Shown here: positions 5,700-20,439 of the stretch, piece by piece | Numbering within the stretch: position 1 is the first letter of the stretch | How the letters are laid out: each line of letters opens with the position of its first letter | Source: Hyalangium minutum | Lineage (GTDB): Bacteria > Myxococcota > Myxococcia > Myxococcales > Myxococcaceae | Assembly (NCBI RefSeq): GCF_000737315.1 | Contig: NZ_JMCB01000003.1 | Coordinates: 930,001-994,000, forward strand | Length of the DNA stretch: 64,000 nt | Reading direction: 5' to 3' | Translations under genes and position numbers: made by a program | Notes under the pieces: generated by a model | The model's input: only the letters and a program-made list of their open reading frames with translations | The model's database searches: none | Told to the model about the DNA's origin: nothing

Positions 5700-6647
5700 A
5701 TGCTGAGAGTCTCGAGGCTGCTTCTGGGATGGTTGGTGCTCGCCGGATGTGCCGAGCCCGCGAACGCGCAACCCGCTCCAGCCGTCCCCTCGTCCCCCGT
5801 GGAGGACGCCCCCGCCGCGAGTGCCTCCCAGGAGACGCCCCCGCGTGCGGAGCCGGCCACCCTGCCCGCCTGGCCCGCTGCCACCGCACCGCTCACGGCG
5901 CAGCCACTCCAGGTGCCCAAGGGCTATCGCAAGAAGCGCATCTACCTGGACGCGGGCCATGGCTACCGCGCCAACACCGGCAACACGTCCGTCACCTGCG
6001 AGACCGAGGCGGACAACATGCTCCGGGTGGCCGAGGATCTGGCGCGCCGGCTCGAGGCCACGGGCCACTTCAAGGTCCGCCTGAGCCGCAGGGCCGGGAA
6101 GGAGGTCCACTACCGCACCCGCGTCTCCGAGGCGGAGAGCTGGAACGCCGATGCCTTCGTGAGCCTCCACTCGGATTCACGCGGCGAGGCCGCCTGGTGG
6201 GAGGCGGCCCCCGGCCAGAAGTGCCTGCGCCAGGACACGACGCCGGGCTACAGCGTGCTCTGGTCGGACGAGACAGCCGATCCCCTGAAGACCCGCCGCG
6301 TGACGCTGGCCCGCGGGCTGGCCCAGCGCATCGGCGCGGCGGGCTTCCTGCCTTATGACGGCGTGGACTACGTGGGCCTCTACGAGGGCGATCCCGAGCA
6401 CCCGGGCGTCTTCGTGGACCGGCACGAGCCCGGCCTTCGGATCATGATGCTGCGCCGGCCGCGCGTTCCCTCGGTCATCATCGAGACGCACCACGCGCTC
6501 GACTTCGAGGAGGCGGCGCGCTGGAAGGAGCTCCGGACGTTGGAGGCTTTCGCCGCGGCGGTGGCGCAGGGGCTGGTGGATGGACTCTCCGACTCGCCCT
6601 CCCCTGCTGCGCCCATGGCGACGACCGGGGTGGCCGCGCAGAAGTAG
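5700..6647 (+). CDS. N-acetylmuramoyl-L-alanine amidase (Amidase_3), lipoprotein
   Basis: IYLDAGHG, E, FVSLHSD, VIIE zinc and catalytic motifs; lipobox LAGC. Confidence 0.9.
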   Translation: MLRVSRLLLGWLVLAGCAEPANAQPAPAVPSSPVEDAPAASASQETPPRAEPATLPAWPAATAPLTAQPLQVPKGYRKKRIYLDAGHGYRANTGNTSVTCETEADNMLRVAEDLARRLEATGHFKVRLSRRAGKEVHYRTRVSEAESWNADAFVSLHSDSRGEAAWWEAAPGQKCLRQDTTPGYSVLWSDETADPLKTRRVTLARGLAQRIGAAGFLPYDGVDYVGLYEGDPEHPGVFVDRHEPGLRIMMLRRPRVPSVIIETHHALDFEEAARWKELRTLEAFAAAVAQGLVDGLSDSPSPAAPMATTGVAAQK

Positions 6648-6671
6648 CGCACGGCCCGTCCGCCCGGGGCC

Positions 6672-7640
6672 TCACTTCTCCTTCGCGAGCTCGTCCACCT
6701 GCTTCTGGAGCCCGTCGGCCTCCTCGAAGAACTCATCCACTGACGAGGCAGGTATCAGCCGGACGGAGGACGGCAGCAACGCGCGGGGGAAGCTCAGAGA
6801 GGAGCTGAAACCCTCGTTGCCCAGCAGCTCCTGCGCCTGGATGAGTGAGCCCAGGCCCAGGACGATCGCGCCAATCATCGCTCCCAGCCGCCGCGAGTCC
6901 CAGCGCGTCACGTAGCGCAGGTGCCAGAACAGTCCCCACGCCACCAGCGCCAGGTAACAGAGCAGCCCCAGCCACTGGCGGCTCGTGCTCCAGCCCAGGC
7001 TGAAGCTCAGAAGGAGCATCAGGCCGGGGATGCAGATGAAGCCCAGCAGCATCAGGCTGCCGATGGCTCCATGGGCCCGGAAGTAGAACTGGCGGCGCGC
7101 GATCCGGCTCGCGATGGACCAGCCGCCCGCCCAGGCCAACGCGAGCGCGGTGGGCAGCAACATGGAGAAAACCAGCTCGCCCCAGTCCGTCTCGTCGTAG
7201 CTGGAGATGTACGTGGAGAGCATCGACGCCAGCATCACCACGCCAAGCGACGCCAGGAACGTCTGCGGCCGATCCAGGAGACGCTGATGAGGCCGGACCG
7301 GGGCCTCGGCCAGCAGCGCTTCGGGCACCTCGAAGCTGCGCCCGCGGAAGCGCAGCATGGTGTCGCCCACCATCACCCGTGCGTCCTGCGCCAGCGTCAT
7401 CTCCGCCATGCGCGCCCAGGGCTCCACCCGGAACGTGCCGTTGCGGCTGCCCACGTCCCGCACCAGGAGCCCGCCATCCTCGGTGCGCTCGATGCGCAGG
7501 TGCGCCGGGGACACCTTGGGATCATCCAGGATGATGTCATTGGCGTAGCCGCGCCCCACCGTGGCGGGGAAGCGCTCCAGCCGGTGGCGCACGTGGACGA
7601 CGTCCCCTTCCAGCACCTCCAGGAAGATCACTTCGTCCAC
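6672..7640 (-). CDS. FHA-domain membrane protein
   Basis: VGRGYANDIILDDPKVSPAHL...GSRNGT FHA motifs followed by several hydrophobic TM segments; GTG start with GGAGG. Confidence 0.85.
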   Translation of the reverse strand: MDEVIFLEVLEGDVVHVRHRLERFPATVGRGYANDIILDDPKVSPAHLRIERTEDGGLLVRDVGSRNGTFRVEPWARMAEMTLAQDARVMVGDTMLRFRGRSFEVPEALLAEAPVRPHQRLLDRPQTFLASLGVVMLASMLSTYISSYDETDWGELVFSMLLPTALALAWAGGWSIASRIARRQFYFRAHGAIGSLMLLGFICIPGLMLLLSFSLGWSTSRQWLGLLCYLALVAWGLFWHLRYVTRWDSRRLGAMIGAIVLGLGSLIQAQELLGNEGFSSSLSFPRALLPSSVRLIPASSVDEFFEEADGLQKQVDELAKEK

Positions 7641-8989
7641 GACAAGCCCTCCAGGTAGTGGCGCGCGAGCTTCCGGGCGTTCTCCGGCGAGAAGCCCGCC
7701 AGGGTGAAGCTCGTGTCGACGCCCTGGTTGTTCGAGGGGAGCGTGGCGGCGCGCAGCACCAGATCGTAGAGCCCCGGGAACTTCTTGTAGGCGCGCAGGC
7801 ACAGCGCGGCGCGCAGGGTGAGCCCTCCGGTGCTCACGAACTCCGAGTTGCACCGGAAGTTCGTCACGTCCTCGCGGGTGGCCTCCACCACCGCCGGATC
7901 CGCGGAGAAGTACGCGCTGAACACCGCGGAGAAGCGCAGCGCTCCCAGCTTGGTCGAGGACAGGTACTGGTGGTTGTACGAGACCGCCCCGGTGCGATGG
8001 TCCGACGAGAGGTACAGATCGTCTTCGGAGGAGCACTGGTAGCTCGTCACGGTGTACTGAGCCTCGGGATCGTGCGGGGTGTCGCCCCAGCACTTGAGGA
8101 AGGGCAGCCAGCGCCCGGGGACGCGATAGGGCCCCAGGCTCTGCTGCGGCAGAGGCGTGGCGAGCAGGCGCTCGGTGATGCGCTGCTGGTGTTCGCGCAG
8201 CTGCGTTCCGACGGAGGCCAGCAGCGCGGAGGGCTCCGAGTCCTCCGGCTTGGCCGCGAGCGCGCGCGTCAGCAACGCCTGGGCGTGCTCCACCGGCACG
8301 AGGAAGCCCACCTGGTTCCCCATGGTGGCCACGTTGACGCCCACCACACGGCCCTCTCCGGTGAGCGAGGGCCCACCGCTCATGCCCGGGTTGATGGCGC
8401 CGGTGAAGTGCACGCGATCATAGAGGGCGTCATGGACCAGCCCGTTGTAGGTGCCCTCGACGATCGTGATGCCCAGATCGCGCGGGTTGCCCATGGCGAA
8501 CAGGCGCGTGCCCTGTGGGGGCGGCTTGTCCAGCAGTTGGAAGAAGTCCGGCACCGGCTGCGCAAGCCGGATCACCGCGAGATCGTGCACCACGTCCACA
8601 TCGAGCAGCTTCACCGCCACCGGGTCCTGGCCATCCCGGACGATCTCGGCGGTGTAGTCCTCCGGGTGCATCACCAGATCCGAGACGACGTGGTAGTTCG
8701 TCAGGGCGTGCCCGTCCGCGCTCACGAAGAAGGCCGAGCCGATAGACGACTTGGTGCCCGAGCGGCTCTCGATGATGCGGACCTGGGCCACGCGGCGCTT
8801 GATGCGCTCGAACAGCTCATGCGTGGCGGGAGGCAGTGACGCCACAGGGAGTTGCGGCACAGCCTCCGGCGCCCCTGAATCAGGCGCGGGAGAGTCGGGC
8901 TGGGCCGCCCCGGAGACCGGAGAAGGCACCGGAGGCTGCGCAGGCGCCGGGGCTTGCGCGAGGAGGACAGCAACGAGGAGAGCAACCAT
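7628..8989 (-). CDS. Secreted trypsin-like (S1C) serine protease with unknown C-terminal domain
   Basis: Triad motifs LTNYHV, HDLAV, GMSGGP; N-terminal signal peptide; no PDZ recognisable. Confidence 0.85.
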   Translation of the reverse strand: MVALLVAVLLAQAPAPAQPPVPSPVSGAAQPDSPAPDSGAPEAVPQLPVASLPPATHELFERIKRRVAQVRIIESRSGTKSSIGSAFFVSADGHALTNYHVVSDLVMHPEDYTAEIVRDGQDPVAVKLLDVDVVHDLAVIRLAQPVPDFFQLLDKPPPQGTRLFAMGNPRDLGITIVEGTYNGLVHDALYDRVHFTGAINPGMSGGPSLTGEGRVVGVNVATMGNQVGFLVPVEHAQALLTRALAAKPEDSEPSALLASVGTQLREHQQRITERLLATPLPQQSLGPYRVPGRWLPFLKCWGDTPHDPEAQYTVTSYQCSSEDDLYLSSDHRTGAVSYNHQYLSSTKLGALRFSAVFSAYFSADPAVVEATREDVTNFRCNSEFVSTGGLTLRAALCLRAYKKFPGLYDLVLRAATLPSNNQGVDTSFTLAGFSPENARKLARHYLEGLSWTK

Positions 8990-9115: not shown

Positions 9116-9898
9116 TCACTTCTTCTCGGTGACGGCGAGGAACCCGCTGAACGTGCCCCCCGTGTCCATGTTCCCGCCCTGGAGCGCAGCCGGGTACAAG
9201 CGCGACACGTTGCCATCCAGATAGAGCGCGTCCTTGCACCCCAGCTGGGTCCGGAACAGCTCCGCGAACGTCTCCAACCGCACCGGCTCGCTGGAGAGGA
9301 CGAGGTGCACCCGCTGAGCATTCCCCGCGTCCACGCCCACGCCGCTCCGGGTGGCCAGCCCCTTGGACGTGTTGAACCCGGGATGCACCTTCCCCTCCGA
9401 GAGCAACAACGGACCGGACTGCGTTGCCTGCCGCACGGAAGCCTGGGTGCCGTAACGGGAGGCCTCGACGACCCGAGCCCCCTCCGCCCCCATCAGGAAG
9501 ACCCCGTTCGGCTTCCAATAGAAGTTGCCGCGGCCCTCACGGAGGTTGAGCGGCGCCAGTTCCTTCCCGTCCTGGATGAAGAGGCCCGTGGGCACCTCTC
9601 CCGGCTCGAAGATGCCCGCGTTCGTGGCGGCCAGCAGCCGCTCACCCTTCCCTGTGAGCCAGGACTCCAGGGCCTCGAAGGTCCTCAGCGGCTGGCCGTC
9701 GTCGTCCTGCCGCAGCAACCGCAGCGACGCGCGGCGCAGGTCGACGGTCACCACCTGGAAGCTCGCGCCCTCGAAGCGCACCGTCCTCACCTCGACCGGA
9801 GAGGAAGCCCGCTCCTTTCCGGCCGACTCGGGAGGAGCAGCCCCTCCGAGCGTTCCGCCCAGCAGCGCCGCGATCAATACCCCTCGGGGGAAAAACAT
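9116..9898 (-). CDS. Phosphodiester glycosidase / YigE (DUF2233)-like secreted protein
   Basis: NAGIF, KPNGVF, QSGPLL, RSGVG, ALYLDG motifs; signal peptide. Confidence 0.8.
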   Translation of the reverse strand: MFFPRGVLIAALLGGTLGGAAPPESAGKERASSPVEVRTVRFEGASFQVVTVDLRRASLRLLRQDDDGQPLRTFEALESWLTGKGERLLAATNAGIFEPGEVPTGLFIQDGKELAPLNLREGRGNFYWKPNGVFLMGAEGARVVEASRYGTQASVRQATQSGPLLLSEGKVHPGFNTSKGLATRSGVGVDAGNAQRVHLVLSSEPVRLETFAELFRTQLGCKDALYLDGNVSRLYPAALQGGNMDTGGTFSGFLAVTEKK

Positions 9899-10000
9899 GA
9901 GGAGGAAGCATAGAGCCCTCCTCCCCGTGCCGTCCTTGACTCGTCTTTGCTTAGCGTTTTCGTTGAGGCAGACTTTTGCTCACACGACGGAGACTCAGAG

Positions 10001-10777
10001 ATGTCCCTCCCAAACTATGAAACGGTGGATGGCTCGACTCCGGAGATCACGCCGCTGGCGGAGGAGCACGGACGACGGCTTCCACTCTCCGCTTTCACGC
10101 TGCTGGCGGGCGGAGATGTCTTCGAGTCCCGGGGCGGCAAGCCTCCCGCGGATGGAGCGGCCCGGGCCCGCGCGTACCTGAAGGCCCAGGTCACGCTCAT
10201 GCCCCACGGCGCCTCCGCCGAGCACATCCAGCGCGTGGAGGCAGACATCGTCCGGCAACTGTCGGGCAACCTCCAGCTCATCGGGCGCATGGAGGCCTCG
10301 AGGCCGGTGACAATCGACCTCATCCCTCCAGGCCAGCCCATGGCGAAGTACGGCTACCCGCGCTCGGTGTCGCCGCTGGCGGCGGGGCTGTTCTGGGATC
10401 ACCCGGACTGGGAGCGAGCACGCATCGCGCTGCGCCAGGACAAGCTCGGCTCGGAGCCGCACCTCGTCTTTCACGAGGTGGCGCACGCCATCCAGGGCCT
10501 GGCCTTCACCCACGAGGAGAACGAGCTCGTCTACCGGACCCTGCTGCGCACCTACCGCCAGCGCGCCAGGGTGGACGAGGTGTTCGCGCTCTACAGCGAG
10601 CGAGAATTCGTGCCCCAAGTCACCGCCCATGATCTGCGCGCGCCCGGCGTGTACGGCCTGGCGCGCCAGCGCTGGAACGAGGAGCACCTGTTCACCCGCT
10701 TCGTGCGCAACCTGTACTTCCCCTACAAGCCGCTGGCGGGCCAGGGCTCGGGGGGATTCAGCTCGTCCTTCGGCTGA
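10001..10777 (+). CDS. Putative zincin metallopeptidase (HEXXH)
   Basis: LVFHEVAH with downstream DEVFA (gluzincin-like third ligand); high GC3; GGAG upstream. Confidence 0.65.
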   Translation: MSLPNYETVDGSTPEITPLAEEHGRRLPLSAFTLLAGGDVFESRGGKPPADGAARARAYLKAQVTLMPHGASAEHIQRVEADIVRQLSGNLQLIGRMEASRPVTIDLIPPGQPMAKYGYPRSVSPLAAGLFWDHPDWERARIALRQDKLGSEPHLVFHEVAHAIQGLAFTHEENELVYRTLLRTYRQRARVDEVFALYSEREFVPQVTAHDLRAPGVYGLARQRWNEEHLFTRFVRNLYFPYKPLAGQGSGGFSSSFG

Positions 10778-10830
10778 TTCCCAGCCTGCTCTCCAGGCAA
10801 GAAGCGCGGTACCGCACCGGTCCGATCGCC

Positions 10831-10890
10831 TTGACAGCGTGTCCGCTATAACGGATATATAGAATATCCGTTTTCACGGACGCATGTCCG
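10831..10890 (+). promoter_or_regulatory. Sigma70-type promoter region overlapped by inverted-repeat operator array
   Basis: TTGACA at 10831; TCCG-N6-CGGA at 10842-10855 and 10867-10880; AACGGATAT-N5-ATATCCGTT at 10850-10872; CGGAC-N4-GTCCG at 10877-10890. Confidence 0.7.
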
Positions 10891-10910
10891 ATAACGAAGA
10901 GGATGCCCCC

Positions 10911-11042
10911 ATGAGCGCCGCTGTCATCGACCTGCAGGACTTCCGCAAGAAGCGTGAGGCCGAGCAGTGTCAGATGGCCCGGCCCGCCCCAATTCGGCCT
11001 TGGCTGCCGGTCTGGGTGTGGGTAATGGTTTGGCCCGCATGA
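10911..11042 (+). CDS. 43-aa small protein coupled to XRE regulator (below ORF-track cut-off)
   Basis: MSAAVIDLQDFRKKREAEQCQMARPAPIRPWLPVWVWVMVWPA; GAGGA RBS; its TGA overlaps the next ATG (ATGA). Confidence 0.7.
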   Translation: MSAAVIDLQDFRKKREAEQCQMARPAPIRPWLPVWVWVMVWPA

Positions 11043-11809
11043 AGTCCGTCAGGGAGAACACCGGACGCAAGAGCAAGGGGCCTTCCCGCCGCAAGGAGGC
11101 GGAGCCCGCCCTCGAGGCTGCGGACGTGTCTCCCGAGCCCCCTCCCCCACCGGCAGCCAAGCCACCCGACGATCGAGCCCCCGCTGCCGCTTCTCCCAAC
11201 GGAGAAGAGACCTGGACGTACGAGGTGGCCCACCCGGATGCCGATCAGGATCTGGCGCCCATTGTCGGCCGGAACCTGCGGAGGCTGCGGGTGCAGCGAG
11301 GGCTGTCGCTCGAGCGGCTGTCGAAGGCCTCGGGCGTGAGCCGGGCCATGCTGGGCCAGATTGAGTTGGGCCAGAGCGCGCCGACCATCAACGTGCTGTG
11401 GAAGATCGCCCGGGCGCTGGATCTGCCGTTCTCGGCGCTCATCAGCACCACGGGTGGCGCGGGCACGCGGCTGATGCGGGCCTCACAGGCCAAGCGGCTC
11501 ACCTCGCACGATGGGCGCTTCGCGTCGCGGGCGCTGTTCCCGTTCGACGAGCCTCGGCGGGTGGAGTTCTACGAGCTGCTGCTGAAGGCCCACAGCGAGG
11601 AGCGGGCGGATGCGCACCCACCCGGCACGCTGGAGAACCTGATGGTCACCCGCGGCACCTTGGAGATGGAGGTGGGCCCGGAGCGCCACCTTCTGGCCGC
11701 GGGGGACGCCATCCTCTTCGAGGCGGACAAGCCCCACGTCTACCGCAACGTGGGGCCCGAGGACGTCACCATGTACCTGGTGATGACGTACGCCGAAGAG
11801 GTCGGCTGA
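11039..11809 (+). CDS. XRE-family HTH regulator with cupin domain and disordered N-terminal extension
   Basis: VGRNLRRLRVQRGLSLERLSKASGVSRAMLGQIELGQSAPTINVLWKIARAL plus C-terminal cupin (HPPGTLE...GDAILFEADKPHVYRN). Confidence 0.9.
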   Translation: MKSVRENTGRKSKGPSRRKEAEPALEAADVSPEPPPPPAAKPPDDRAPAAASPNGEETWTYEVAHPDADQDLAPIVGRNLRRLRVQRGLSLERLSKASGVSRAMLGQIELGQSAPTINVLWKIARALDLPFSALISTTGGAGTRLMRASQAKRLTSHDGRFASRALFPFDEPRRVEFYELLLKAHSEERADAHPPGTLENLMVTRGTLEMEVGPERHLLAAGDAILFEADKPHVYRNVGPEDVTMYLVMTYAEEVG

Positions 11810-11816
11810 GCCGGTG

Positions 11817-12275
11817 CTACTTGGCCATGCCCATCATCATGGGCATGCCGTTGCACATCATCATCATCGGCGCGCCCATCGCCATCATGGAGTTCATGGC
11901 GTCGCAGCACTCCTTCATCATCGCCATGTCCTGACCCTCCATGGGCATCATCTTCATCATCATGCCGTCCTTGCCCATCTCGCACGTCATCCGGCACATC
12001 ATCGGCATCATCTGACGCATCATCATGGGCATCATCATCGGCATGCCCATGCCCATGCCCATCATCTGGGGCATCATGCCGCCCATCATCTGAGGCATCA
12101 TGCCGCCCATCATCTGGGGCATCATGCCGCCCATCATCTGGGGCATCATGCCCATCATGTTCATGGGCATCATGCCGTTCATCATGGGGTTCATGCCCAT
12201 CATCGGCATCATGCCGTTCATCATCGGCATGTTCTGGTTCGGCATGTTCATGGGCATGGCGTTGGCGGTCATCAT
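11817..12275 (-). CDS. Methionine-rich protein (73 Met in 152 aa) with Cys-containing C-terminal part
   Basis: GGAGGAG RBS; non-Met codons mostly G/C-ending; manual count of 73 Met and 5 Cys. Confidence 0.8.
   Translation of the reverse strand: MMTANAMPMNMPNQNMPMMNGMMPMMGMNPMMNGMMPMNMMGMMPQMMGGMMPQMMGGMMPQMMGGMMPQMMGMGMGMPMMMPMMMRQMMPMMCRMTCEMGKDGMMMKMMPMEGQDMAMMKECCDAMNSMMAMGAPMMMMCNGMPMMMGMAK
12060..12152. repeat. 24-bp tandem repeat, about 3.9 copies, encoding GGMMPQMM
   Basis: Unit catcatctg(g/a)ggcatcatgccgcc starting at 12060, 12084, 12108 and 12132 (last partial). Confidence 0.95.
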
Positions 12276-12530
12276 GGTCGGCGGGTCTCCTCCCGGTCTC
12301 CCGGGACGTGAAGAAACACTGTCTGAATAGACCTGCCCCGGCTCCACCGCGACTGCACCGCAGGGCCCCCCCGCGCTTTCCTCCGATCCAGCGGAGGACT
12401 GGCCGATCACGGCGGAGGGATTGCTGGCTGAGACGGAGACTCCTCTGTTGGCGCGGACAGAGGTGTCGCGCGCCGGATGAAAGGGCTCCGTCTGAGACTG
12501 CACAACGAGACTGCCCTGTGAGACGAGGGC

Positions 12531-12947
12531 TCAGTCCTCTGCGTCGGCGTCCTGGCTCCGGTAGGCATTCTCCAGCAGCGCCCAGAGCATCTTCACGCCC
12601 AGGTTGGGCTGCTCGCGGGAGAGCTTCACGAGGTGGGCCCGCGTGAAGCGCAGGGCCTCGCCATCGGAGACCGCGCGGCAGGTCATCCTCGCCGGAGCCG
12701 TGGCCACGAGCGCGCGATCGCCGAAGAAGGTGGACGGGCCCTGCTCGCTGCTGCTCCCGCCCTTGGTGATCTCCACGCGGCCGGTGACGACCACCCAGAA
12801 GGCATCGAGGAGATCTCCCTCGCCGAGGAGCTGCTCTCCATCCTGGAAGGGCCGCCGTTCGGCGGTCTGGAACAGCTTCTTGATCTCGGTCCCGCTGAGC
12901 TGGCCGAACAGGGAGGACGCCTTCAAGGCATCCATCCCCTCCATCAT
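12531..12947 (-). CDS. Stand-alone cyclic nucleotide-binding domain protein
   Basis: SLFGQLS...GEQLLGEGD...FWVVVTGRVEI...FFGDRAL; no HTH or effector domain; start uncertain (12947 or 12935). Confidence 0.8.
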   Translation of the reverse strand: MMEGMDALKASSLFGQLSGTEIKKLFQTAERRPFQDGEQLLGEGDLLDAFWVVVTGRVEITKGGSSSEQGPSTFFGDRALVATAPARMTCRAVSDGEALRFTRAHLVKLSREQPNLGVKMLWALLENAYRSQDADAED

Positions 12948-13102
12948 GTAGAGCGGATTGACCGCCAGTTCCGTGCGCTCGTTGTCATCACGCTGCTGTC
13001 CCACGTGCCCTCCCGGCATGCGTCGTGGAGACAGACGCTAGAGGCAAACGAGAGGGCCGGGCAACCCTGGATGGGCCTCCGGCCCTCTCTTCCCGGCGGG
13101 AC

Positions 13103-15418
13103 TCAGCGCGGCGCCATCTGCCGGAGGATGTTCAACGTCTCCGTGGCCGCCGCCGTGGGCTGCAGCGCCGTGTCCGCGATCCCGGAGATCACCCGGGTGA
13201 TGTTGTGGTCCACGACGCCCGCCTGCGCCCACGTCTCCACGGTCGGCGCGGTGATGTAGACGGAGTAAGCGTGATGCCCCGAGCCGGGCCTCTCGCCGAT
13301 GACATGGAGAATGGTGCGACGCGAGGAGCGATCCGGCAGCGAGCCATAGAGGAACTCGCCGATCCGGTAGCCCGCGCGCACGCGGCCCGCGGTGACGAGG
13401 ATGTGCTCAGGGGCGACCTTGTAGCCCGCAGTCTCCAGCTCCGCGCGCACCCGCTCCAGGTAGGGAGCCAGGTGCCCCTCGTCCGTGAGTGACCAGGCGT
13501 TGAGGCCGTCGGAGATGACGATCTGCACGTCGTACCGGCCGCTCTGGCTGGTGCGCAGGGTGCGCAGCTTCTCGGTGGCCACATCGGAGAGCACCTCTCC
13601 CGAGGGCGGGTGGAGGATGTAGTCGGTGCGATCCTTGGACTGGGTCTGGACGGGGACGGCCTGGGAGAGGGCCACCGCGAAGGTAGCGGGCAGCTCGGCG
13701 AAGATGCTCTCCTTGGCGTCCTTGTAGAGGAAGCGGACCTCGCGATCGAGGTCTGGGTTCAAATCCCAAGGCTGGGTGCCGTGGCCCTCGGCGATGAAGA
13801 CGCCGCGCTTGCGCACTGCGGTGAGCTGGGCACGGGCCTCATCGAGGATCTCCGCGTCCGAGCGCGCATCGCCCTTGCGGCGGCGGTACTGGAGGTAGAC
13901 CCAGGAGGGATCGCCGAAGTGCGGCCCCGGCTTCCCCTGCGCATCGATGACGCCCAGGCCCTGGAAGAAGGCCCACATGCGATCATCCACCTTGTAGCCG
14001 AACTTCTCGCGGATGCGGACGTGGTCCTGGAAGGCGGTGGTGAGGTAGCTGAGCATGGGATCGTTCTTCGTCGGCAGTCCCATGAGGTAGCCGGGATTGG
14101 CCGGCATGATCTGGTCCAAGCACCAGTCCAGATCGTCCAGGGATACCTCCATGTGCAGCGTGGAGCAGACGTCCAGGCCGATCATCATCCCGTGGAGCTT
14201 GCCCATGACGATGTCCTCGAGGCAGCAGCGCACCAACTGTGTCTTGGAGCGGAACACCTCGGGGCCGATGAAGCCCGCCACGTCGTTGAGGTGCACCCAG
14301 GGCTGGGCCGCACGGCCCGCGCCGAGCTGGGCGGTGGCCACCTTCTGCTTGAGCACGCGGGCGAAGCCGTACTTGCGAGACTCGTGCACCACCATGTCGA
14401 AGCCATTGCCATGGCCATTGGTGCCGTCGGCGCCCTGCCCCGTCTCGAAGTAGAGGCCGTACTTGCCGGTGCGCTTCGCGGCGTGATCGATCATCTTGGG
14501 GATCGTCACGTCGAACGTCTTGTTGGCGCCCTCGGTGCCTCCCAGGCTCTGGAACCAGAGCGCGGTGGACCCTGGCTGGAGCGTCTCCACCTCGGCCTGG
14601 ATGTCGATGTGGGCCAGCACGCAGTGGGGCAGCACATCCGCCAGGTTGAACGCCTCGAGCAGATCCTGGAGGGTCAGCTCGATGGCCATCACCGAGTTGA
14701 CGTCACTGGAGACGGGGTTGTTGCCGAGCACCACGTCACCCACGCCGTAGGCCCAGCCGTCGAGCACCTGCCAGCGGATGTCCTCCGTGTTGTCGGTGGG
14801 CGAGTTGGGCTGGATGCGTGCGCCCATGTAGCCCTTGGCGCCCACGTTGCTGCCGGGCAGCGGGTTGAAGATCTTGCTGCCCACAGCGATGAGCTGCTCG
14901 TTGCTCATCAGCTTGACGATGCAGCCGATGATGTCGCTGCTCAGCCCGCCCATGACGGCTTTGATCTCGTCCTCGCTCTTGTCGAGCAGGTACGTCTTGA
15001 GCTCGCCCAGGGTCCACCCCGCCACCTGGGCGGCCTTCGTGGCGTCTACGCCCTGCTCGATGAGCTGGTAGAGGCCGTCATCGAAGAGGACATGCGAGCG
15101 CAGATCTCCAATGCGGGTGTTGGAGAGCAGAGTCCTGGCGTTGGCGCGGGAGGCCTCGTCGGAGGCGGAGATCCCCGCAGCCTCGTCGCCCTCTTTGTAC
15201 TCGTTGGCCGCGCCGATGAGCTGCTTGTAGAAGGTCTGATCGAAGCCACCGCGGGCGCGGTCCATGTAAGCGAAGAGGTCCTCGCCGGGCTTGACCTCGG
15301 GGACGTAGACGCCGGCGGGAGGCTCGACGGGGGTGGGCTTCTTGTCCTCTCCGCAGCCCACGGAGAGCGCCGTCGCGCCGAGCAGCGCCGCCGAGAGGAA
15401 GGAGCGGCGCCGCATCAT
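13103..15418 (-). CDS. eutB: Fused ethanolamine ammonia-lyase (EutB-EutC) with Tat lipoprotein-type signal peptide
   Basis: EutB motifs RIQPN, GDVVLGNNP, FQSLGGTE, YFETGQG, GFIGPE, LED..GKL, DPMLSY; EutC motifs DVQIVISDGL, GRVRAG, IGERPG; N-terminus MMRRRSFLSAALLGATALSVGC; an in-frame upstream start at 15508 is possible. Confidence 0.9.
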   Translation of the reverse strand: MMRRRSFLSAALLGATALSVGCGEDKKPTPVEPPAGVYVPEVKPGEDLFAYMDRARGGFDQTFYKQLIGAANEYKEGDEAAGISASDEASRANARTLLSNTRIGDLRSHVLFDDGLYQLIEQGVDATKAAQVAGWTLGELKTYLLDKSEDEIKAVMGGLSSDIIGCIVKLMSNEQLIAVGSKIFNPLPGSNVGAKGYMGARIQPNSPTDNTEDIRWQVLDGWAYGVGDVVLGNNPVSSDVNSVMAIELTLQDLLEAFNLADVLPHCVLAHIDIQAEVETLQPGSTALWFQSLGGTEGANKTFDVTIPKMIDHAAKRTGKYGLYFETGQGADGTNGHGNGFDMVVHESRKYGFARVLKQKVATAQLGAGRAAQPWVHLNDVAGFIGPEVFRSKTQLVRCCLEDIVMGKLHGMMIGLDVCSTLHMEVSLDDLDWCLDQIMPANPGYLMGLPTKNDPMLSYLTTAFQDHVRIREKFGYKVDDRMWAFFQGLGVIDAQGKPGPHFGDPSWVYLQYRRRKGDARSDAEILDEARAQLTAVRKRGVFIAEGHGTQPWDLNPDLDREVRFLYKDAKESIFAELPATFAVALSQAVPVQTQSKDRTDYILHPPSGEVLSDVATEKLRTLRTSQSGRYDVQIVISDGLNAWSLTDEGHLAPYLERVRAELETAGYKVAPEHILVTAGRVRAGYRIGEFLYGSLPDRSSRRTILHVIGERPGSGHHAYSVYITAPTVETWAQAGVVDHNITRVISGIADTALQPTAAATETLNILRQMAPR

Positions 15419-15818
15419 CACGGGCTGCGAGGAGAGAAGCGCACCAGGATGGGAGGTCCGCGCTCGCACCCCGTGGGCGCGGCGCTGCGGGTAGTACGTC
15501 TTCATCACGTCATCTCCGGGAGGTCCGAGTCAGGGGTCGACACGCGCTGCTGCTGAGGTGCGAGCGCCCGCTCGGTTCGGACGCCGCCAGGGATTCCGCA
15601 AATTCTCGCGCCGCGCCTGACATCGACGCAAACCGAGGGACCGCAGAGAGCTGGGTGACGTGAAACCCAGTGGACGTTCGGGCAGGGAGGCGGCGTGTCG
15701 GAACACACCGCCTACGGGGAATCCCTGACGAGTGGTTCGCGCTGTGACACAGGAGGCTACCGTTCATTGCTACCTGTGAAGTAGGGTCCGGCGCTGCCTA
15801 CCTGCCTGGAGATACGCC

Positions 15819-17285
15819 GTGTCTCTGCCCACCGACGAAGAACTCGACCCCTTTGCCTCGCTTTGCGGCTCGACCGTGGGACCTTGGCTCATCCTCGATC
15901 GCTTTGACTCCGGCTCTTTTGGCGTGGTGTTCCGTGCCCAGCGCGCCGGCCACCCCGAGGCGGGTCCGTTCGCCGTGAAGATGGCCAAGCAGCCCTGGGA
16001 CGAGCGCTTCGAGCGGGAGGCCAAGTTGCTGCAGCGCGCGACCCACCCCGCGCTACCGCGCTTCGAGGACTTCGGAATCTGGACCTCCCCCAAGGGCCAC
16101 CGTTACCCGTACATCGCCATGGAGTGGATCGAAGGCTTCACCCTCTACGACTGGTTCCGTGAAGCCCCGCGCACTCACCGCGAGGTCTTCCAAGTGCTCG
16201 CCCAAGTGACGCGCGGCCTCGAAGCCGTTCACGCCACGGGCGCCGTTCATCGGGACGTGAAGGGGGACAATATCCGCGTCACTGCCGCAGGCCGCGCTGT
16301 GCTGCTGGACTTCGGCTCGGGTTGGTTCCCGGGTGCACGCCCTCTGACGGACACCTGCGCTCCTCCGGGCACTACCCCCTACCGCCCTCCTGAGCTGATG
16401 CGCTTCATCTGGCGCTTTCGCAAGGATGACGAGGCGCGCTGGCACGCGCGCACCTCCGATGACCTGTACTCCTTGGGAGTGACGGCATACCGCCTCGTGA
16501 CAGGCACCTATCTGCCACCGGTCACCGAGACAGGAGACAACGAGGCTCGAAAGAGGCTGCGCCCGAGCCAGTTCGCCACCGTCACCCCTGAGTTGGAGTC
16601 CATCATCTTGCGTTTGCTCTCCGAGGACCGCGAGCAGCGTGGGACTGCCACCAAGGTCGCAGCGAAACTGGAGAGCGGCAGCCAACAGCCTTCCGCTGAG
16701 ATTGAGATCGAGCAGCGCATTCTTCCGAAGGTGGCCGCCGTCCCATTGGAGAGGAGAACCTCCAGCAGCGAAGAGCCCTCCAGTTCTGCCCCCTCCCAGC
16801 CTTCTACATCCGCTCAGCTGCCGGTACAGCCTGAGTCCCCAGCCTGCGGCACCCTGCCTTCCTGGCTGTCCTGGGCAGGCGCTGCCACGATGGGAGCCGC
16901 AGCAGCACTCGGAATTGTGGCGCTGCGACAGGGCCTACCGGAAAGAACAGATCCTCCCACGCCCATTGCCCAAGAATCACCTGTGCCTCCAGTCGAAACG
17001 CCTGATGCTGGTGTGGGAGATACGGCCCTCGCCTCGGCCCAGCCTTTTCCTCGCGACCCAGCCCCCATTTTGGCCCTTGGGCTGCCCATGCCGAAGCAAC
17101 CCTTCCCAGGCCAACGCAAGCCTCCGTGTGACCCCATCCTGGAAAGGGCCATCAACGGTGGATGTTGGTTAGGGCCCATCGGCGCTCGAAAACCACCCTG
17201 TGGCAACCTCGGGTACGACTACGACGGGGGCTGCTACGCCCCCAACTTCAACGGCCCTCGCCAGCCCACCTCGGATCCGCCATGA
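15819..17285 (+). CDS. Ser/Thr protein kinase with TM segment and Cys-containing C-terminus (toxin-locus-associated type)
   Basis: DSGSFG, AVK, HRDVKGDN, DFG, GTTPYRPPE; GGAG + GTG start; more A/T-ending codons than the backbone. Confidence 0.85.
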   Translation: MSLPTDEELDPFASLCGSTVGPWLILDRFDSGSFGVVFRAQRAGHPEAGPFAVKMAKQPWDERFEREAKLLQRATHPALPRFEDFGIWTSPKGHRYPYIAMEWIEGFTLYDWFREAPRTHREVFQVLAQVTRGLEAVHATGAVHRDVKGDNIRVTAAGRAVLLDFGSGWFPGARPLTDTCAPPGTTPYRPPELMRFIWRFRKDDEARWHARTSDDLYSLGVTAYRLVTGTYLPPVTETGDNEARKRLRPSQFATVTPELESIILRLLSEDREQRGTATKVAAKLESGSQQPSAEIEIEQRILPKVAAVPLERRTSSSEEPSSSAPSQPSTSAQLPVQPESPACGTLPSWLSWAGAATMGAAAALGIVALRQGLPERTDPPTPIAQESPVPPVETPDAGVGDTALASAQPFPRDPAPILALGLPMPKQPFPGQRKPPCDPILERAINGGCWLGPIGARKPPCGNLGYDYDGGCYAPNFNGPRQPTSDPP

Positions 17286-17294
17286 CCGATGCCG

Positions 17295-17858
17295 CTAAAC
17301 CTCCTCGAATCTCGTGCCTGTAGCCCCGATACCTTCCAATGCGCCCTTGAGTTCCTCAGAAACAACGAGGACTCCCTCCCAACCCGCCAAACGAAACACC
17401 CGAGCCCCCCCCACCTTCGAGGGGTCTACACGGAGACTGCGCACGGACTTGTATTGACCTACCTTGTGAGGCACTCCGTCCTCATGAGTCCAGAGCCGAA
17501 TCCGTGAGGCTTTCTCATCAATGCAGGCGATACGACGCGTGGCGACAAGGATCAAATACTGATCGGAATACCCCTCAATGCCTGCGGGAATGAACTGCAC
17601 GTCATGGGCGGCCAGTTCCGTGAAGAGAGATGCCACCCTGACATGCACAATGGGGACTCCCAGATGGGTCTCAGAGAAGTCGAGCGGTCTGCCCGCCTGG
17701 TCGATGGAAATGTGGAAAGGCCCTACACCGCTTACAGGGGTACCACTCTTAAAGAGCCAGTCGTCCATCTCGCGCCCTTCGCTGTCGACGGGATCATCCA
17801 GTTGCCAGCGATGCGGGAACTCGACAGTGTCGTAGAGGGCAAAGAAGCGTGGTGCCAT
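17295..17858 (-). CDS. Imm11/DUF1629-like immunity protein
   Basis: GRPLDF, PIVHVRVASLF, DVQFIP, CIDE, VFRL..W...LVVSE motifs; 9 bp downstream of the AHH toxin. Confidence 0.8.
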   Translation of the reverse strand: MAPRFFALYDTVEFPHRWQLDDPVDSEGREMDDWLFKSGTPVSGVGPFHISIDQAGRPLDFSETHLGVPIVHVRVASLFTELAAHDVQFIPAGIEGYSDQYLILVATRRIACIDEKASRIRLWTHEDGVPHKVGQYKSVRSLRVDPSKVGGARVFRLAGWEGVLVVSEELKGALEGIGATGTRFEEV

Positions 17859-17867
17859 GCGTACCCT

Positions 17868-19232
17868 CTACAGGGGTGAGTTCCGGGTAACGAGTTGATT
17901 GAGCTCCGTACCAGGTGTGGCGATCTCCTGAGCCAAGTCCTTGAGAACACTGAGCAGCGCGGCGCGGCACTGCTCGACGGTGCGGCACCCTTTCGTCGCG
18001 TCGTCCAACTCTTGGAAGATCCTCCGATGGTATTCCTCCGGATGCGGTCCGTAGTGTCCTTCCAGAGGAAGCTTGTTTGCTGGATCGTCCAGCGTCATCC
18101 CGGCTTTTGCGAAGAGCTTCCTGAACCTGGGGGTCCACTGCCCTCCGCGCGCAGTGGATTTCTCGTTACAAATCGTGGCGATGTGATGCAGTTCAATGCA
18201 CGGGCCGGTGCCGCCCCGAGCCCGCGCCGCCATGGCCACCGCGTTGGCGGGCAGCCGAATGCTGACACCCTCGGCACTCAGCGCTATCTCTTCCACTGCC
18301 GCCAGTGCAGGCAGCGGGATACCCGCCTGGCCTTCGGCCTGCATCGCCACTTGCGCGGAGCCAGGCAACGTCGGCACCTTGGCTGCGAACTCCTGTGCCG
18401 TCCGGCCAATCGCTGCCATCAACAGCATGGCAAATGCGCGTGCGGATTCGCGTCCGATGACCTTGCCGAAACGCTCGCCCGCGTCGCGAATCTGCTCGAA
18501 GGTGACCGCTGCCTGCACGTCCTCCATCAACTGGAGCCAGCCAGACACGAGGTTACGGAGCGTGTCATACCCCACATACAAAACCATCCCCACGCCCATC
18601 ACCGCGACCAACGCAGGGGCCACAGGGTTGAGTGCCAGGATCAGCAGCATGGACCCAATCGTCCAGAGAGCCGCGCTCATGAGCGCCCGGAACTCCACCA
18701 TCTCCCCCAGCGCCTTCTGCAGTTCATCCAGTACGGGACTCTTGCTCAGAGCCAGTGCCCAGATGTATCGCCCGTGCAGATCCAGGTAACGCCCTCCCAC
18801 CAGCGCGCCTCCGAGGCAATCGCCGTAGAACCGGTGCACCCGTTGGCACCACTGCCGGTAACGTTCCGCCGTGTCTAAGTCCTCCTTTGTCAGCGGCCCT
18901 TCCAGGGGCTCGCCAGGCCCTATCGGCACCAGCTTTTTATCTCGGGGCAGGTAGAGATAGTTGCCACTCTGAGGGGACATCTGGAACATCGTCTCCACCA
19001 TCTGGCGTGGCGTCCCTGTCCACCGCACCTCCCGCGCCAGTTGCCTCACGGCTTCCTGGAACTCCTCTTCCTCCACCAGGACAGGCTGCACGTCAGCGGC
19101 ACGAGGAACGTGGACGGTGGCTCTTCCATGGCCGGTATCCCCTGTACGGACGATCCGAGGAGTGCCAGCACACCCGACAACCACCGCCAGGAGCAGCGCG
19201 CCGACTTGCCACAGCATCCGTCTTAGAGTCAT
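17868..19232 (-). CDS. Lipoprotein polymorphic toxin with C-terminal AHH nuclease (SitA-like)
   Basis: Lipobox VVGC; C-terminal HHIAT..N and GPHPEEYH motifs; followed by an immunity gene. Confidence 0.85.
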   Translation of the reverse strand: MTLRRMLWQVGALLLAVVVGCAGTPRIVRTGDTGHGRATVHVPRAADVQPVLVEEEEFQEAVRQLAREVRWTGTPRQMVETMFQMSPQSGNYLYLPRDKKLVPIGPGEPLEGPLTKEDLDTAERYRQWCQRVHRFYGDCLGGALVGGRYLDLHGRYIWALALSKSPVLDELQKALGEMVEFRALMSAALWTIGSMLLILALNPVAPALVAVMGVGMVLYVGYDTLRNLVSGWLQLMEDVQAAVTFEQIRDAGERFGKVIGRESARAFAMLLMAAIGRTAQEFAAKVPTLPGSAQVAMQAEGQAGIPLPALAAVEEIALSAEGVSIRLPANAVAMAARARGGTGPCIELHHIATICNEKSTARGGQWTPRFRKLFAKAGMTLDDPANKLPLEGHYGPHPEEYHRRIFQELDDATKGCRTVEQCRAALLSVLKDLAQEIATPGTELNQLVTRNSPL

Positions 19233-19900
19233 GAGCCATCCCTTCTGATGAGGTCACGTCTCCGCCGACGCCACGCCGTATAGGAAGCCACCAGCGCCCC
19301 GGCCAGTGCCCCCGCCAGGGCTCCCGCAGCCCGCCGTGACAGGCCCCCATGCGTCGGCGCCTCCATGCGGAACGTCTCCAGCGAGGCCCGAACCTCGGGC
19401 GCCAGTTCCTCCCACCGCGCCGCGGGCGCACTCACCGTCACCACCGCATGCCTTCCCTCGGAGGCCAGCCCCGCCACCAGCACTGTCCTCACCTGCCCTG
19501 CCTCCTTCAACGTCCCCAGCACTTCCACCCGGGGCTCCGGCCCCACCACCCGCTCCACCCGCTCCGGCACCAGCGTCAGCCCCAGCTCCTTCTCGAAATG
19601 CCGCACCACCGCCGCCGCGAAGTCGTCCCGCTCCGAAGGACTCGCCGAGAACGTCCTCTCCACCACCGCCACCAGCACCCGTGCCGCCTCCGCTCCCTCC
19701 CCGTCCGACAACGAGGCCGACAGGAACCGCGGCGCCCCCGGCTGCAGCGCCACCGCCCCTGCCCGAGTCCCCGCGTAGGGCTCCTGCCGCACCATCAGGA
19801 AACCCGCCGGCGGCCGAAAGCTGTAGCCGTCCTTGCGCAGCTCGGAGCCGAGCGCGCCCTGCACCACCAGCAGGCTGGCCAAAAGGGAGGAGAGAACCAT
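19229..19900 (-). CDS. Hypothetical exported protein with C-terminal TM and Arg cluster
   Basis: Signal peptide MVLSSLLASLLVVQGA; tail AAGALAGALAGALVASYTAWRRRRR; stop overlaps toxin ATG. Confidence 0.7.
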   Translation of the reverse strand: MVLSSLLASLLVVQGALGSELRKDGYSFRPPAGFLMVRQEPYAGTRAGAVALQPGAPRFLSASLSDGEGAEAARVLVAVVERTFSASPSERDDFAAAVVRHFEKELGLTLVPERVERVVGPEPRVEVLGTLKEAGQVRTVLVAGLASEGRHAVVTVSAPAARWEELAPEVRASLETFRMEAPTHGGLSRRAAGALAGALAGALVASYTAWRRRRRDLIRRDGS

Positions 19901-19962
19901 GGGCTTGCTCCGAGGATAACCCCGTGCGCTCCGTCCGCCCCGCACGTTAACCTGCGCCCGCA

Positions 19963-20439
19963 ATGACCCCTGAAGCCCGGGCCGAGATGCAGGCGCGAGC
20001 AGAACGTGCCCTGCGGCGCGGAGAACTATCCGATGCGGTGAGCCTCTACGAGACGCTCGTCCAGTCGTTCCCCTCGGACGAAGCCCTCGCCCAGAAGCTC
20101 GCCCTCCTCCGCGAGTCCCTCCAGCCCATGGAACTCGCCAAGTCCAAGCCACCCCCACGCGAGCAACCCCTGCCACTCGGCCCCTCCTCCCCCGTCCAAG
20201 AGGGCGAGCGGCTCTTCGCCCTCGGCGACTATGCCGGTGCCGCCGCCGCCTACCGCCGCGCCCTCCAAGAGCGCCCCGGCAACGATCTCATCCAGGAACG
20301 CCTCGTGGAGCTGTACCGGCTGGCCACCGCCTCGCCTACACACTCCCCCACCGATCGCGCCCTCCCCAAGGAGCGTGAACATCGCCTCCAGGCCCTGTTG
20401 GATCGGCTGGCCGCCCGGCGACGTCTCAAGCGCGAGTGA
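19963..20439 (+). CDS. TPR-like helical repeat protein
   Basis: Two TPR-like units (AERALRRGELSDAVSLYE; GERLFALGDYAGAAAAYRRAL). Confidence 0.7.
   Translation: MTPEARAEMQARAERALRRGELSDAVSLYETLVQSFPSDEALAQKLALLRESLQPMELAKSKPPPREQPLPLGPSSPVQEGERLFALGDYAGAAAAYRRALQERPGNDLIQERLVELYRLATASPTHSPTDRALPKEREHRLQALLDRLAARRRLKRE

Follow-up and report, generated by a model that had tools for sequence, protein, structure and literature searches.

A fused EutB-EutC ethanolamine ammonia-lyase with a predicted twin-arginine lipoprotein leader in Hyalangium minutum

A single-chain ethanolamine ammonia-lyase gene

We analyzed a 64,000-nucleotide stretch of the myxobacterium Hyalangium minutum (hereafter the window; NCBI RefSeq assembly GCF_000737315.1, contig NZ_JMCB01000003.1, positions 930,001 to 994,000), in which one gene encodes both subunits of ethanolamine ammonia-lyase (EAL), EutB and EutC, as a single polypeptide behind a leader with a twin-arginine motif. 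All coordinates below are positions in the window. The gene is a single long open reading frame (ORF) read from the minus strand, and its stop lies at 13103. Its complete coding sequence occupies 13103..15505 (-), corresponding to 800 aa plus the stop codon, and the protein (P0001) is also listed at 800 aa in a collection of 5.8 billion proteins. No second EAL copy was found within the window.

The start codon was assigned from composition and conservation. The G+C content at third codon positions (GC3) in this frame was 0.92 in the gene body, 0.83 at 15508..15419, and 0.60–0.70 farther upstream. A Shine-Dalgarno-like GGAG (15514..15517, minus strand) lies 8 nt 5' of the ATG at 15505, with a purine-rich counterpart in the same place in the orthologous loci L004–L009. 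Six orthologous loci, from Archangium, Vitiosangium, and a Myxococcaceae metagenome-assembled genome (MAG), carry an ATG-AAG-AC start at equal distance, preceded by the purine-rich element. Because of the GC3 step, the GGAG 8 nt before it, and the start kept in six orthologous loci, ATG 15505 (MKTYYPQRR...), 29 codons upstream of 15418, is probably the true start. The original prediction had begun the protein at MMRRR (15418 or 15421), which by GC3 and the conserved upstream start is about 29 residues too short. The longer start adds only to the length of the n-region and leaves the reading of the twin-arginine pair (R33-R34) and lipobox cysteine (C51) unchanged. The first in-frame ATG beyond the leader codes for Met81 (residues counted on the translation); a start there would remove a conserved, well-folded segment, GVYVPEV...GEDLF. 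We also considered an adenosylcobalamin (AdoCbl) riboswitch or other RNA element in the extension upstream of MMRRR, and rejected it: no relevant Rfam match was found over positions 10000–20000 even at permissive E-values, and GC3 and the conserved start mark the extension as coding. A promoter and terminator scan around the EAL gene gave no match, the consensus sigma-70 model being AT-rich and of little use in a 67% GC myxobacterium.

The two EAL subunits are both recognizable in this chain. The EutB part matched Pfam PF06751 with 458 bits against a cut-off of 25 (E about 4e-137 to 4.9e-137), and the EutC part matched PF05985 with 106.7 bits against a cut-off of 25.8 (E about 1.5e-30 to 1.6e-30). 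Among the NCBIfam models, EutB (NF011649) was passed with 598 bits (cut-off 554), and the EutC equivalog (NF003971) scored 82.6 bits, far under its cut-off of 230. The best solved relatives were chains A and B of the E. coli EAL structure 3ABO and the Listeria EutB structure 2QEZ. Both EAL domains lie in one 800-aa chain, unlike the two subunits by which EAL is otherwise recognized, and the Pfam matches thereby bear out the single EutB-EutC polypeptide that had been predicted from the sequence.

We built an AlphaFold2 model on 30 homologues (mean pLDDT 87, pTM 0.83) and compared it with solved structures. The EutB domain, residues 93–526 (13928..15229, minus strand), superposed on 3abo_A with a Foldseek template modeling (TM) score of 0.90 and a root-mean-square deviation of 2.1 Å. 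The EutC core, residues 591–798 (13112..13735, minus strand), covers positions 33–225 of the 235 in the PF05985 profile and matched PDB EutC chains at E about 6e-9; the C-terminal ~258 residues of the model superposed on EutC chains (3abo_B/D) with TM scores of 0.69–0.73, the structural match starting near residue 540. Since the EutC match opens at profile position 33, inside the chain, the N-terminal segment of a free-standing EutC is missing. Residues 527–590 (13736..13927, minus strand) join the two domains. With pLDDT mostly 85–98 and helices at 533–543, 550–566, and 584–601, the join is modeled as structured helices, not as a floppy linker.

The substrate site of EutB is retained. The motifs RIQPN, NNP, YFETG, GLDVC, and LSY, on which the retention of this site had first been proposed, are all present and align with R160/Q162, N193, E287, D362, and the MLNY segment of E. 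coli EutB. By this alignment, R230, Q232, N263, E354, D445, and M475 in the EutB domain correspond to E. coli R160, Q162, N193, E287, D362, and M392, which are reported to be the substrate-binding residues (Shibata 2010; Mori 2014). Apart from P0130, all Tat-bearing members sampled from the family described below, in six phyla, share these six residues with the window protein. The role of E287 in EutB is supported by published work (PMC8473560). Relative to E. coli EutB, the domain carries an insertion of 15 residues after residue 357 (771-aa numbering). The exception, P0130/P0276 from a Pseudomonadota MAG, has an RR leader and Cys and 43% identity to the window protein; in it Q162 is replaced by R, N193 by D, and M392 by I, and it may be a derivative that acts on another substrate or is inactive.

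A twin-arginine leader conserved across phyla

The leader reads MMRRRSFLSAALLGATALSVG-C, followed by a Pro-rich stretch. It opens with a long basic n-region, residues 1–31 (MKTYYPQRRAHGVRARTSHPGALLSSQPVMM; 15413..15505, minus strand), which has a GC3 of 0.83, differs by whole-codon indels among Hyalangium and Archangium orthologues, and was modeled with pLDDT below 50. The twin-arginine motif R32-R33-R34-S-F36-L37 follows at 15395..15412 (-). Read as M-R-R-R-S-F-L, it fits the consensus (S/T)-R-R-x-F-L-K found near the N-terminus of substrates of the twin-arginine translocation (Tat) pathway. The uncharged stretch after RR is 18 residues long (SFLSAALLGATALSVGCG), where at least 13 are expected. 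The h-region (15356..15394, minus strand; predicted helix 33–47) is moderately hydrophobic and rich in Gly, Ala, and Ser, as in Tat leaders, and ends in the lipobox L47-S-V-G50 (LLGATALSVGC), which together with C51 fits the PROSITE-style lipobox pattern. Cys51 (TGC, 15353..15355, minus strand) is the predicted lipid-modified first residue of the mature protein; a Cys stands here in about 85–93 of 120 homologues, mostly Myxococcota. A Pro-rich tether, residues 52–75 (GEDKKPTPVEPPAGVYVPEVKPGE; 15281..15352, minus strand), runs from Cys51 to the folded domain, with low pLDDT up to residue ~56 and values above 85 from ~61; its length and sequence vary among homologues apart from GVxIPEV. The twin arginines, the 18 uncharged residues, and the lipobox are in keeping with the Tat lipoprotein-type leader and tether of the original prediction.

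We next evaluated how widely this leader is kept, using the best 120 matches in the 5.8-billion-protein collection. All 120 were EutB-EutC fusions of 734–829 aa, and 110 of them showed a strict RR ahead of an uncharged hydrophobic stretch; the remaining ten were mostly gene calls opening within the h-region, e.g. MLGASALALGGC. The identical rule was passed by 23 of 897 other long ORFs (2.6%) in the same loci. Given 110/120 against this background, the leader is more than a chance feature. Among 30 aligned members from several phyla (A1; 43–80% identity), R33 was invariant, R34 and F36 were at least 90% conserved, and other leader positions varied.

Scanning GTDB species genomes with the clade-specific peptides QLVRCCLED and PWVH[LV]NDV yielded at least 590 confirmed loci, of which 80 were kept for a survey of phylum and leader. 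The kept loci came from Myxococcota, Planctomycetota, Acidobacteriota, Verrucomicrobiia, Gemmatimonadaceae, and Betaproteobacteria (Rubrivivax, Dechloromonas), and with N-termini read from DNA without gene calls, the RR leader was recovered in nearly all of them. A lipobox Cys is typical of Myxococcota and Betaproteobacteria. Members from Planctomycetota and Acidobacteriota have the RR leader without the Cys, often with AxA-like sites (ARA, ASA, AQA). Conservation of RRxFL and Cys had been put forward as a check on the predicted leader: RR-x-F is kept across phyla, and the Cys is absent in these two. Homologues lacking the leader had been named as evidence that would speak against it; the only close leaderless relatives turned out to be a separate paralogue and eukaryotic forms, which favors the prediction.

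The paralogue was found at ten kept loci (Archangium, Vitiosangium, and other Myxococcaceae), as a fused EAL opening MAESLT... with neither RR, h-region, nor Cys. The leader-bearing and the leaderless form coexist in at least four genomes: Vitiosangium sp. GDMCC 1.1324 (L005 and L049), Archangium violaceum Cb vi76 (L006 and L066), Myxococcus sp. RHSTA-1-4 (L021 and L053), and the Myxococcaceae MAG Zod (L004 and L080). The six active-site residues are intact in both kinds of copy. Two intact copies differing mainly in the leader are what would be expected if the leader decides the compartment. The leaderless copies at L049, L050, L059, L061, L063, L066, L078, L080, and L082 (about 6001–8200 in each) lie in a conserved neighborhood that encodes a PlsC-type acyltransferase (PF01553), an NAD epimerase/dehydratase, and an alpha/beta hydrolase whose N-terminus has a hydrophobic, signal-like stretch, a gene content that may tie the paralogue to lipid metabolism.

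In a rough neighbor-joining tree made without bootstrap, the myxobacterial leaderless paralogues nest inside the leader-bearing crown group, with the fused EALs of eukaryotes and the more distant leaderless forms of bacteria branching below it. Other leaderless EutB-EutC fusions include a Sorangium protein (P0234) and metagenomic P0144, P0155, and P0202. Four are eukaryotic (P0127, P0128, P0122, and P0136, from Andalucia godoyi, Anaeramoeba flamelloides, Paratrimastix pyriformis, and Blastocladiella emersonii), with 43–53% identity to the window protein and intact active-site residues; P0125 has an additional N-terminal C2-like region. Because the eukaryotic forms branch immediately beneath the Tat-bearing bacterial crown in this tree, the gene may have been transferred between domains of life. 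The leaderless forms in bacteria and eukaryotes rule out that the fusion is peculiar to exported enzymes.

The EAL gene stands alone, without a eut operon. The roughly 8 kb to each side hold no shell, eutA, aldehyde dehydrogenase, or transporter gene, no B12 gene was seen in the window flanks, and the absence of shell, eutA, aldehyde dehydrogenase, and transporter genes noted at first sight of the locus holds over these flanks. Three homologue contigs were searched for a partner gene of the reactivase, aldehyde dehydrogenase, transporter, B12, or chaperone kind, and none was conserved. When 5363 flank ORFs from 84 loci were compared all against all, only lineage-level synteny was recovered, with no neighbor common across phyla, and neither the window flanks nor the 84 related loci held microcompartment shell or eut accessory genes.

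Predicted export, rival explanations, and neighboring genes

These features lead us to read the window protein as a Tat-exported EAL located in the cell envelope, with a probability of roughly 60%. Under this proposal the two EAL subunits, fused head to tail as EutB and then EutC minus its N-terminal segment, would form a catalytically competent protomer of ~85 kDa. Its precursor, carrying the twin-arginine leader, would fold in the cytoplasm and cross the inner membrane by Tat, a route that suits EAL because the enzyme must fold around a large cofactor. In H. minutum, cleavage and lipidation at Cys51 would leave the enzyme hanging from a membrane into the periplasm by its short Pro-rich tether; relatives without the Cys would be soluble or signal-anchored. 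The enzyme's substrate there would be free ethanolamine, such as that released when phosphatidylethanolamine is broken down in the envelope or in the surroundings, and its products would be ammonia and acetaldehyde; no ethanolamine transporter, microcompartment, or dedicated eut operon would be needed. AdoCbl might be loaded before export or from B12 in the periplasm, and the fusion would carry both halves of the cofactor pocket across together. Tat dependence and lipidation, like the final membrane, the AdoCbl loading route, the oligomeric state, and the physiological role, are what we infer from these comparisons. Inner-membrane lipoproteins of Myxococcus xanthus are marked by Lys at position +2 (PMC3222651). 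Membrane sorting is not inferable from this rule, as the +2 residue is Gly in the window protein and Lys in close orthologues.

Several observations weigh against export by Tat. The Pfam TAT_signal model (PF10518) scored 11.5 bits on the isolated leader, under its gathering score of 22.7, and was listed for only one of 30 family members (E = 0.002), weak matches to this 21-position model being filtered out; an NCBIfam scan of the isolated leader gave sub-threshold matches or none. We take sub-threshold TAT_signal scores from a model of 21 positions neither to confirm nor to refute the motif, although formally the leader fails this profile. If the long start is right, an RR at residues 33–34 comes late for a Tat motif. 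EAL is normally a ~500-kDa (alpha-beta)6 complex, too large for Tat; inactivated EAL can need the ATP-dependent reactivase EutA, which could not work in the periplasm; and, being exchangeable, its cofactor might escape. The EAL gene also has no linked gene for an adenosyltransferase, B12 transport, or aldehyde handling.

The low TAT_signal score would also suit an ordinary lipoprotein exported unfolded via Sec, which would fold in the periplasm and take up AdoCbl there from B12 brought in through the outer membrane, its RR being merely part of a basic n-region. The lipobox and h-region are likewise compatible with Sec and signal peptidase II, and EAL binds its cofactor reversibly. We nonetheless consider this route unlikely, as a Sec n-region accepts Lys or Arg anywhere, yet the invariant R33 and the R34 and F36 kept in at least 90% of members across phyla match the Tat consensus RRxF(L), and the composition and moderate hydrophobicity of the h-region are Tat-like. 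We give little credence to a cytoplasmic enzyme whose leader is vestigial, an uncleaved anchor on the cytoplasmic side of the membrane, or untranslated. As far as is known, characterized EALs are all cytoplasmic and rely on cytoplasmic cofactor and ATP-dependent reactivation, and leaderless fused EALs do exist. But a vestigial leader would not retain RR-x-F in six phyla while its flanks drift, translation of the leader is indicated by a GC3 of 0.83–0.93 and the conserved upstream start, and a start after the leader at Met81 would cut into the folded protein; moreover, genomes wanting a cytoplasmic copy keep a separate leaderless paralogue.

The exported protein might instead act on another small vicinal amino alcohol, or serve as an envelope protein that binds or captures B12. 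Such a function would fit the lack of a eut context tying the gene to ethanolamine, the 15-residue insertion in EutB, the EutC equivalog score of 82.6 against 230 bits, and the three changed substrate residues of P0130/P0276. It is made improbable by the identity of the six substrate residues in all sampled Tat-bearing members but P0130, by the close superposition of the EutB part on 3abo_A (TM 0.90), and by the catalytic Glu and Asp, which a mere binding protein would not keep.

Beyond the single protein, the comparison raises the prospect of AdoCbl radical catalysis outside the cytoplasm. We regard it as about an even bet that the widespread single-chain EAL clade (at least 590 species genomes, six phyla) is Tat-exported and active in the periplasm or envelope without ATP, reactivase, or microcompartment, freeing ammonia from ethanolamine of lipid turnover or necromass. 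Its cofactor would be pre-loaded, or AdoCbl would be scavenged in the periplasm, and joining the subunits in one chain would have adapted the enzyme to be moved across, cofactor pocket included, in a single folded piece. The original prediction had assigned the enzyme to ethanolamine from prey phosphatidylethanolamine. This role proved not to be specific, the clade being equally common in non-predatory Planctomycetota, Acidobacteriota, and Betaproteobacteria. It is possible for a myxobacterium but, since most carriers are non-predatory, not clade-defining. The original prediction had further supposed that the enzyme is loaded with B12 in the cytoplasm and that its export, as an alternative to a microcompartment, keeps acetaldehyde outside. 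Both ideas are conjectural, and acetaldehyde permeates membranes freely, so its exclusion is not assured.

The remaining genes around the EAL gene include a regulator, a Met-rich ORF, a cNMP-binding protein, a Ser/Thr kinase, and a toxin-immunity pair. The stand-alone cyclic nucleotide monophosphate (cNMP)-binding protein (12531-13019, minus strand) is encoded 84 nt downstream of the EAL stop and could be co-transcribed with the EAL gene; it belongs to no cross-phylum ORF family. The same holds for the XRE-type helix-turn-helix and cupin regulator at 10967-11809 (+), which is in no ORF family common to related loci across phyla. The Met-rich ORF (11817-12503, minus strand) lies on the same strand as the EAL and cNMP-binding genes and downstream of both. 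It has 73 Met in 228 residues with MMPQMMGG repeats, C-terminal Cys motifs (CRMTCEMG, KECCDAM, MMMCNG), and no Pfam match. Its frame is the real one, as its GC3 is 0.89 against 0.40 for the antisense His-rich ORF at 11814-12311 (+), and its product may be a Cu(I)- or other metal-binding or storage protein. The polymorphic toxin-immunity pair (17295-19232) consists of an AHH-family HNH/EndoVII nuclease toxin (17868-19232, minus strand) followed by its Imm11 immunity protein (17295-17858, minus strand). Farther off, a 260-aa ORF at 9116-9898 (-) with a Pfam NAGPA phosphodiester glycosidase domain has a hydrophobic signal-like N-terminus and no evident link to EAL.

Significance and comparison with known systems

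On a strong comparative basis, the window protein appears to keep the known EAL chemistry while its architecture and its predicted compartment are new. In a literature search of incomplete coverage, in which an earlier mention may have been missed, we found no description of a Tat-targeted or periplasmic EAL, nor of EutBC fusions. To our knowledge, the AdoCbl-dependent radical enzymes studied so far are all cytoplasmic or housed in microcompartments. If the proposal is true, an envelope EAL would bring radical B12 chemistry into a compartment that has no ATP, raise questions of how the cofactor is loaded, protected, and replaced, and provide a transporter-free nitrogen route from the most abundant bacterial phospholipid head group. 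The carrier groups (Myxococcota, Planctomycetota, Acidobacteriota, Verrucomicrobiota, Gemmatimonadota, and Betaproteobacteria) dominate soils and sediments, and the database label "EutB" given to clade proteins hides both the fusion and the leader. Genomes with a Tat copy and a leaderless copy offer a ready experimental contrast.

Tat-dependent lipoproteins described in Streptomyces and haloarchaea combine a twin-arginine motif and a lipobox Cys in one leader, as here. We know of none that is a B12 enzyme, and such lipoproteins are not known to have been documented in Myxococcota. The leaderless fused EutB-EutC proteins have the same architecture and active site as the window protein; they lack RR, h-region, and Cys, and are presumably cytoplasmic.

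A close comparison is with E. coli and Salmonella EutB and EutC (PDB 3ABO, 5YSN; EC 4.3.1.7), which share the domains, the six substrate residues, and the fold (TM 0.90 for EutB and about 0.7 for EutC), and presumably the AdoCbl radical chemistry. Whereas those enzymes are built from two subunits, the window protein is one polypeptide, with ~32% identity in the EutB part, an added RR/lipobox leader, and no eut operon, shell, EutA reactivase, or EutH/Eat transporter nearby. In the microcompartment-associated EAL of enterobacteria, the N-terminal segment of EutC carries the encapsulation peptide (PMC5821096); in the window protein, EutC lies within the chain and lacks that segment. The reductive dehalogenases (RdhA/PceA) are corrinoid enzymes that bear a twin-arginine signal at the N-terminus, fold with their cofactor, and after export sit on the outer side of the inner membrane (PMC6095959). 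Although they differ in having an unrelated fold, a cobamide redox center with Fe-S clusters and no AdoCbl radical chemistry, and an anchor provided by RdhB and not by lipid, they set a precedent for a Tat-exported corrinoid enzyme.

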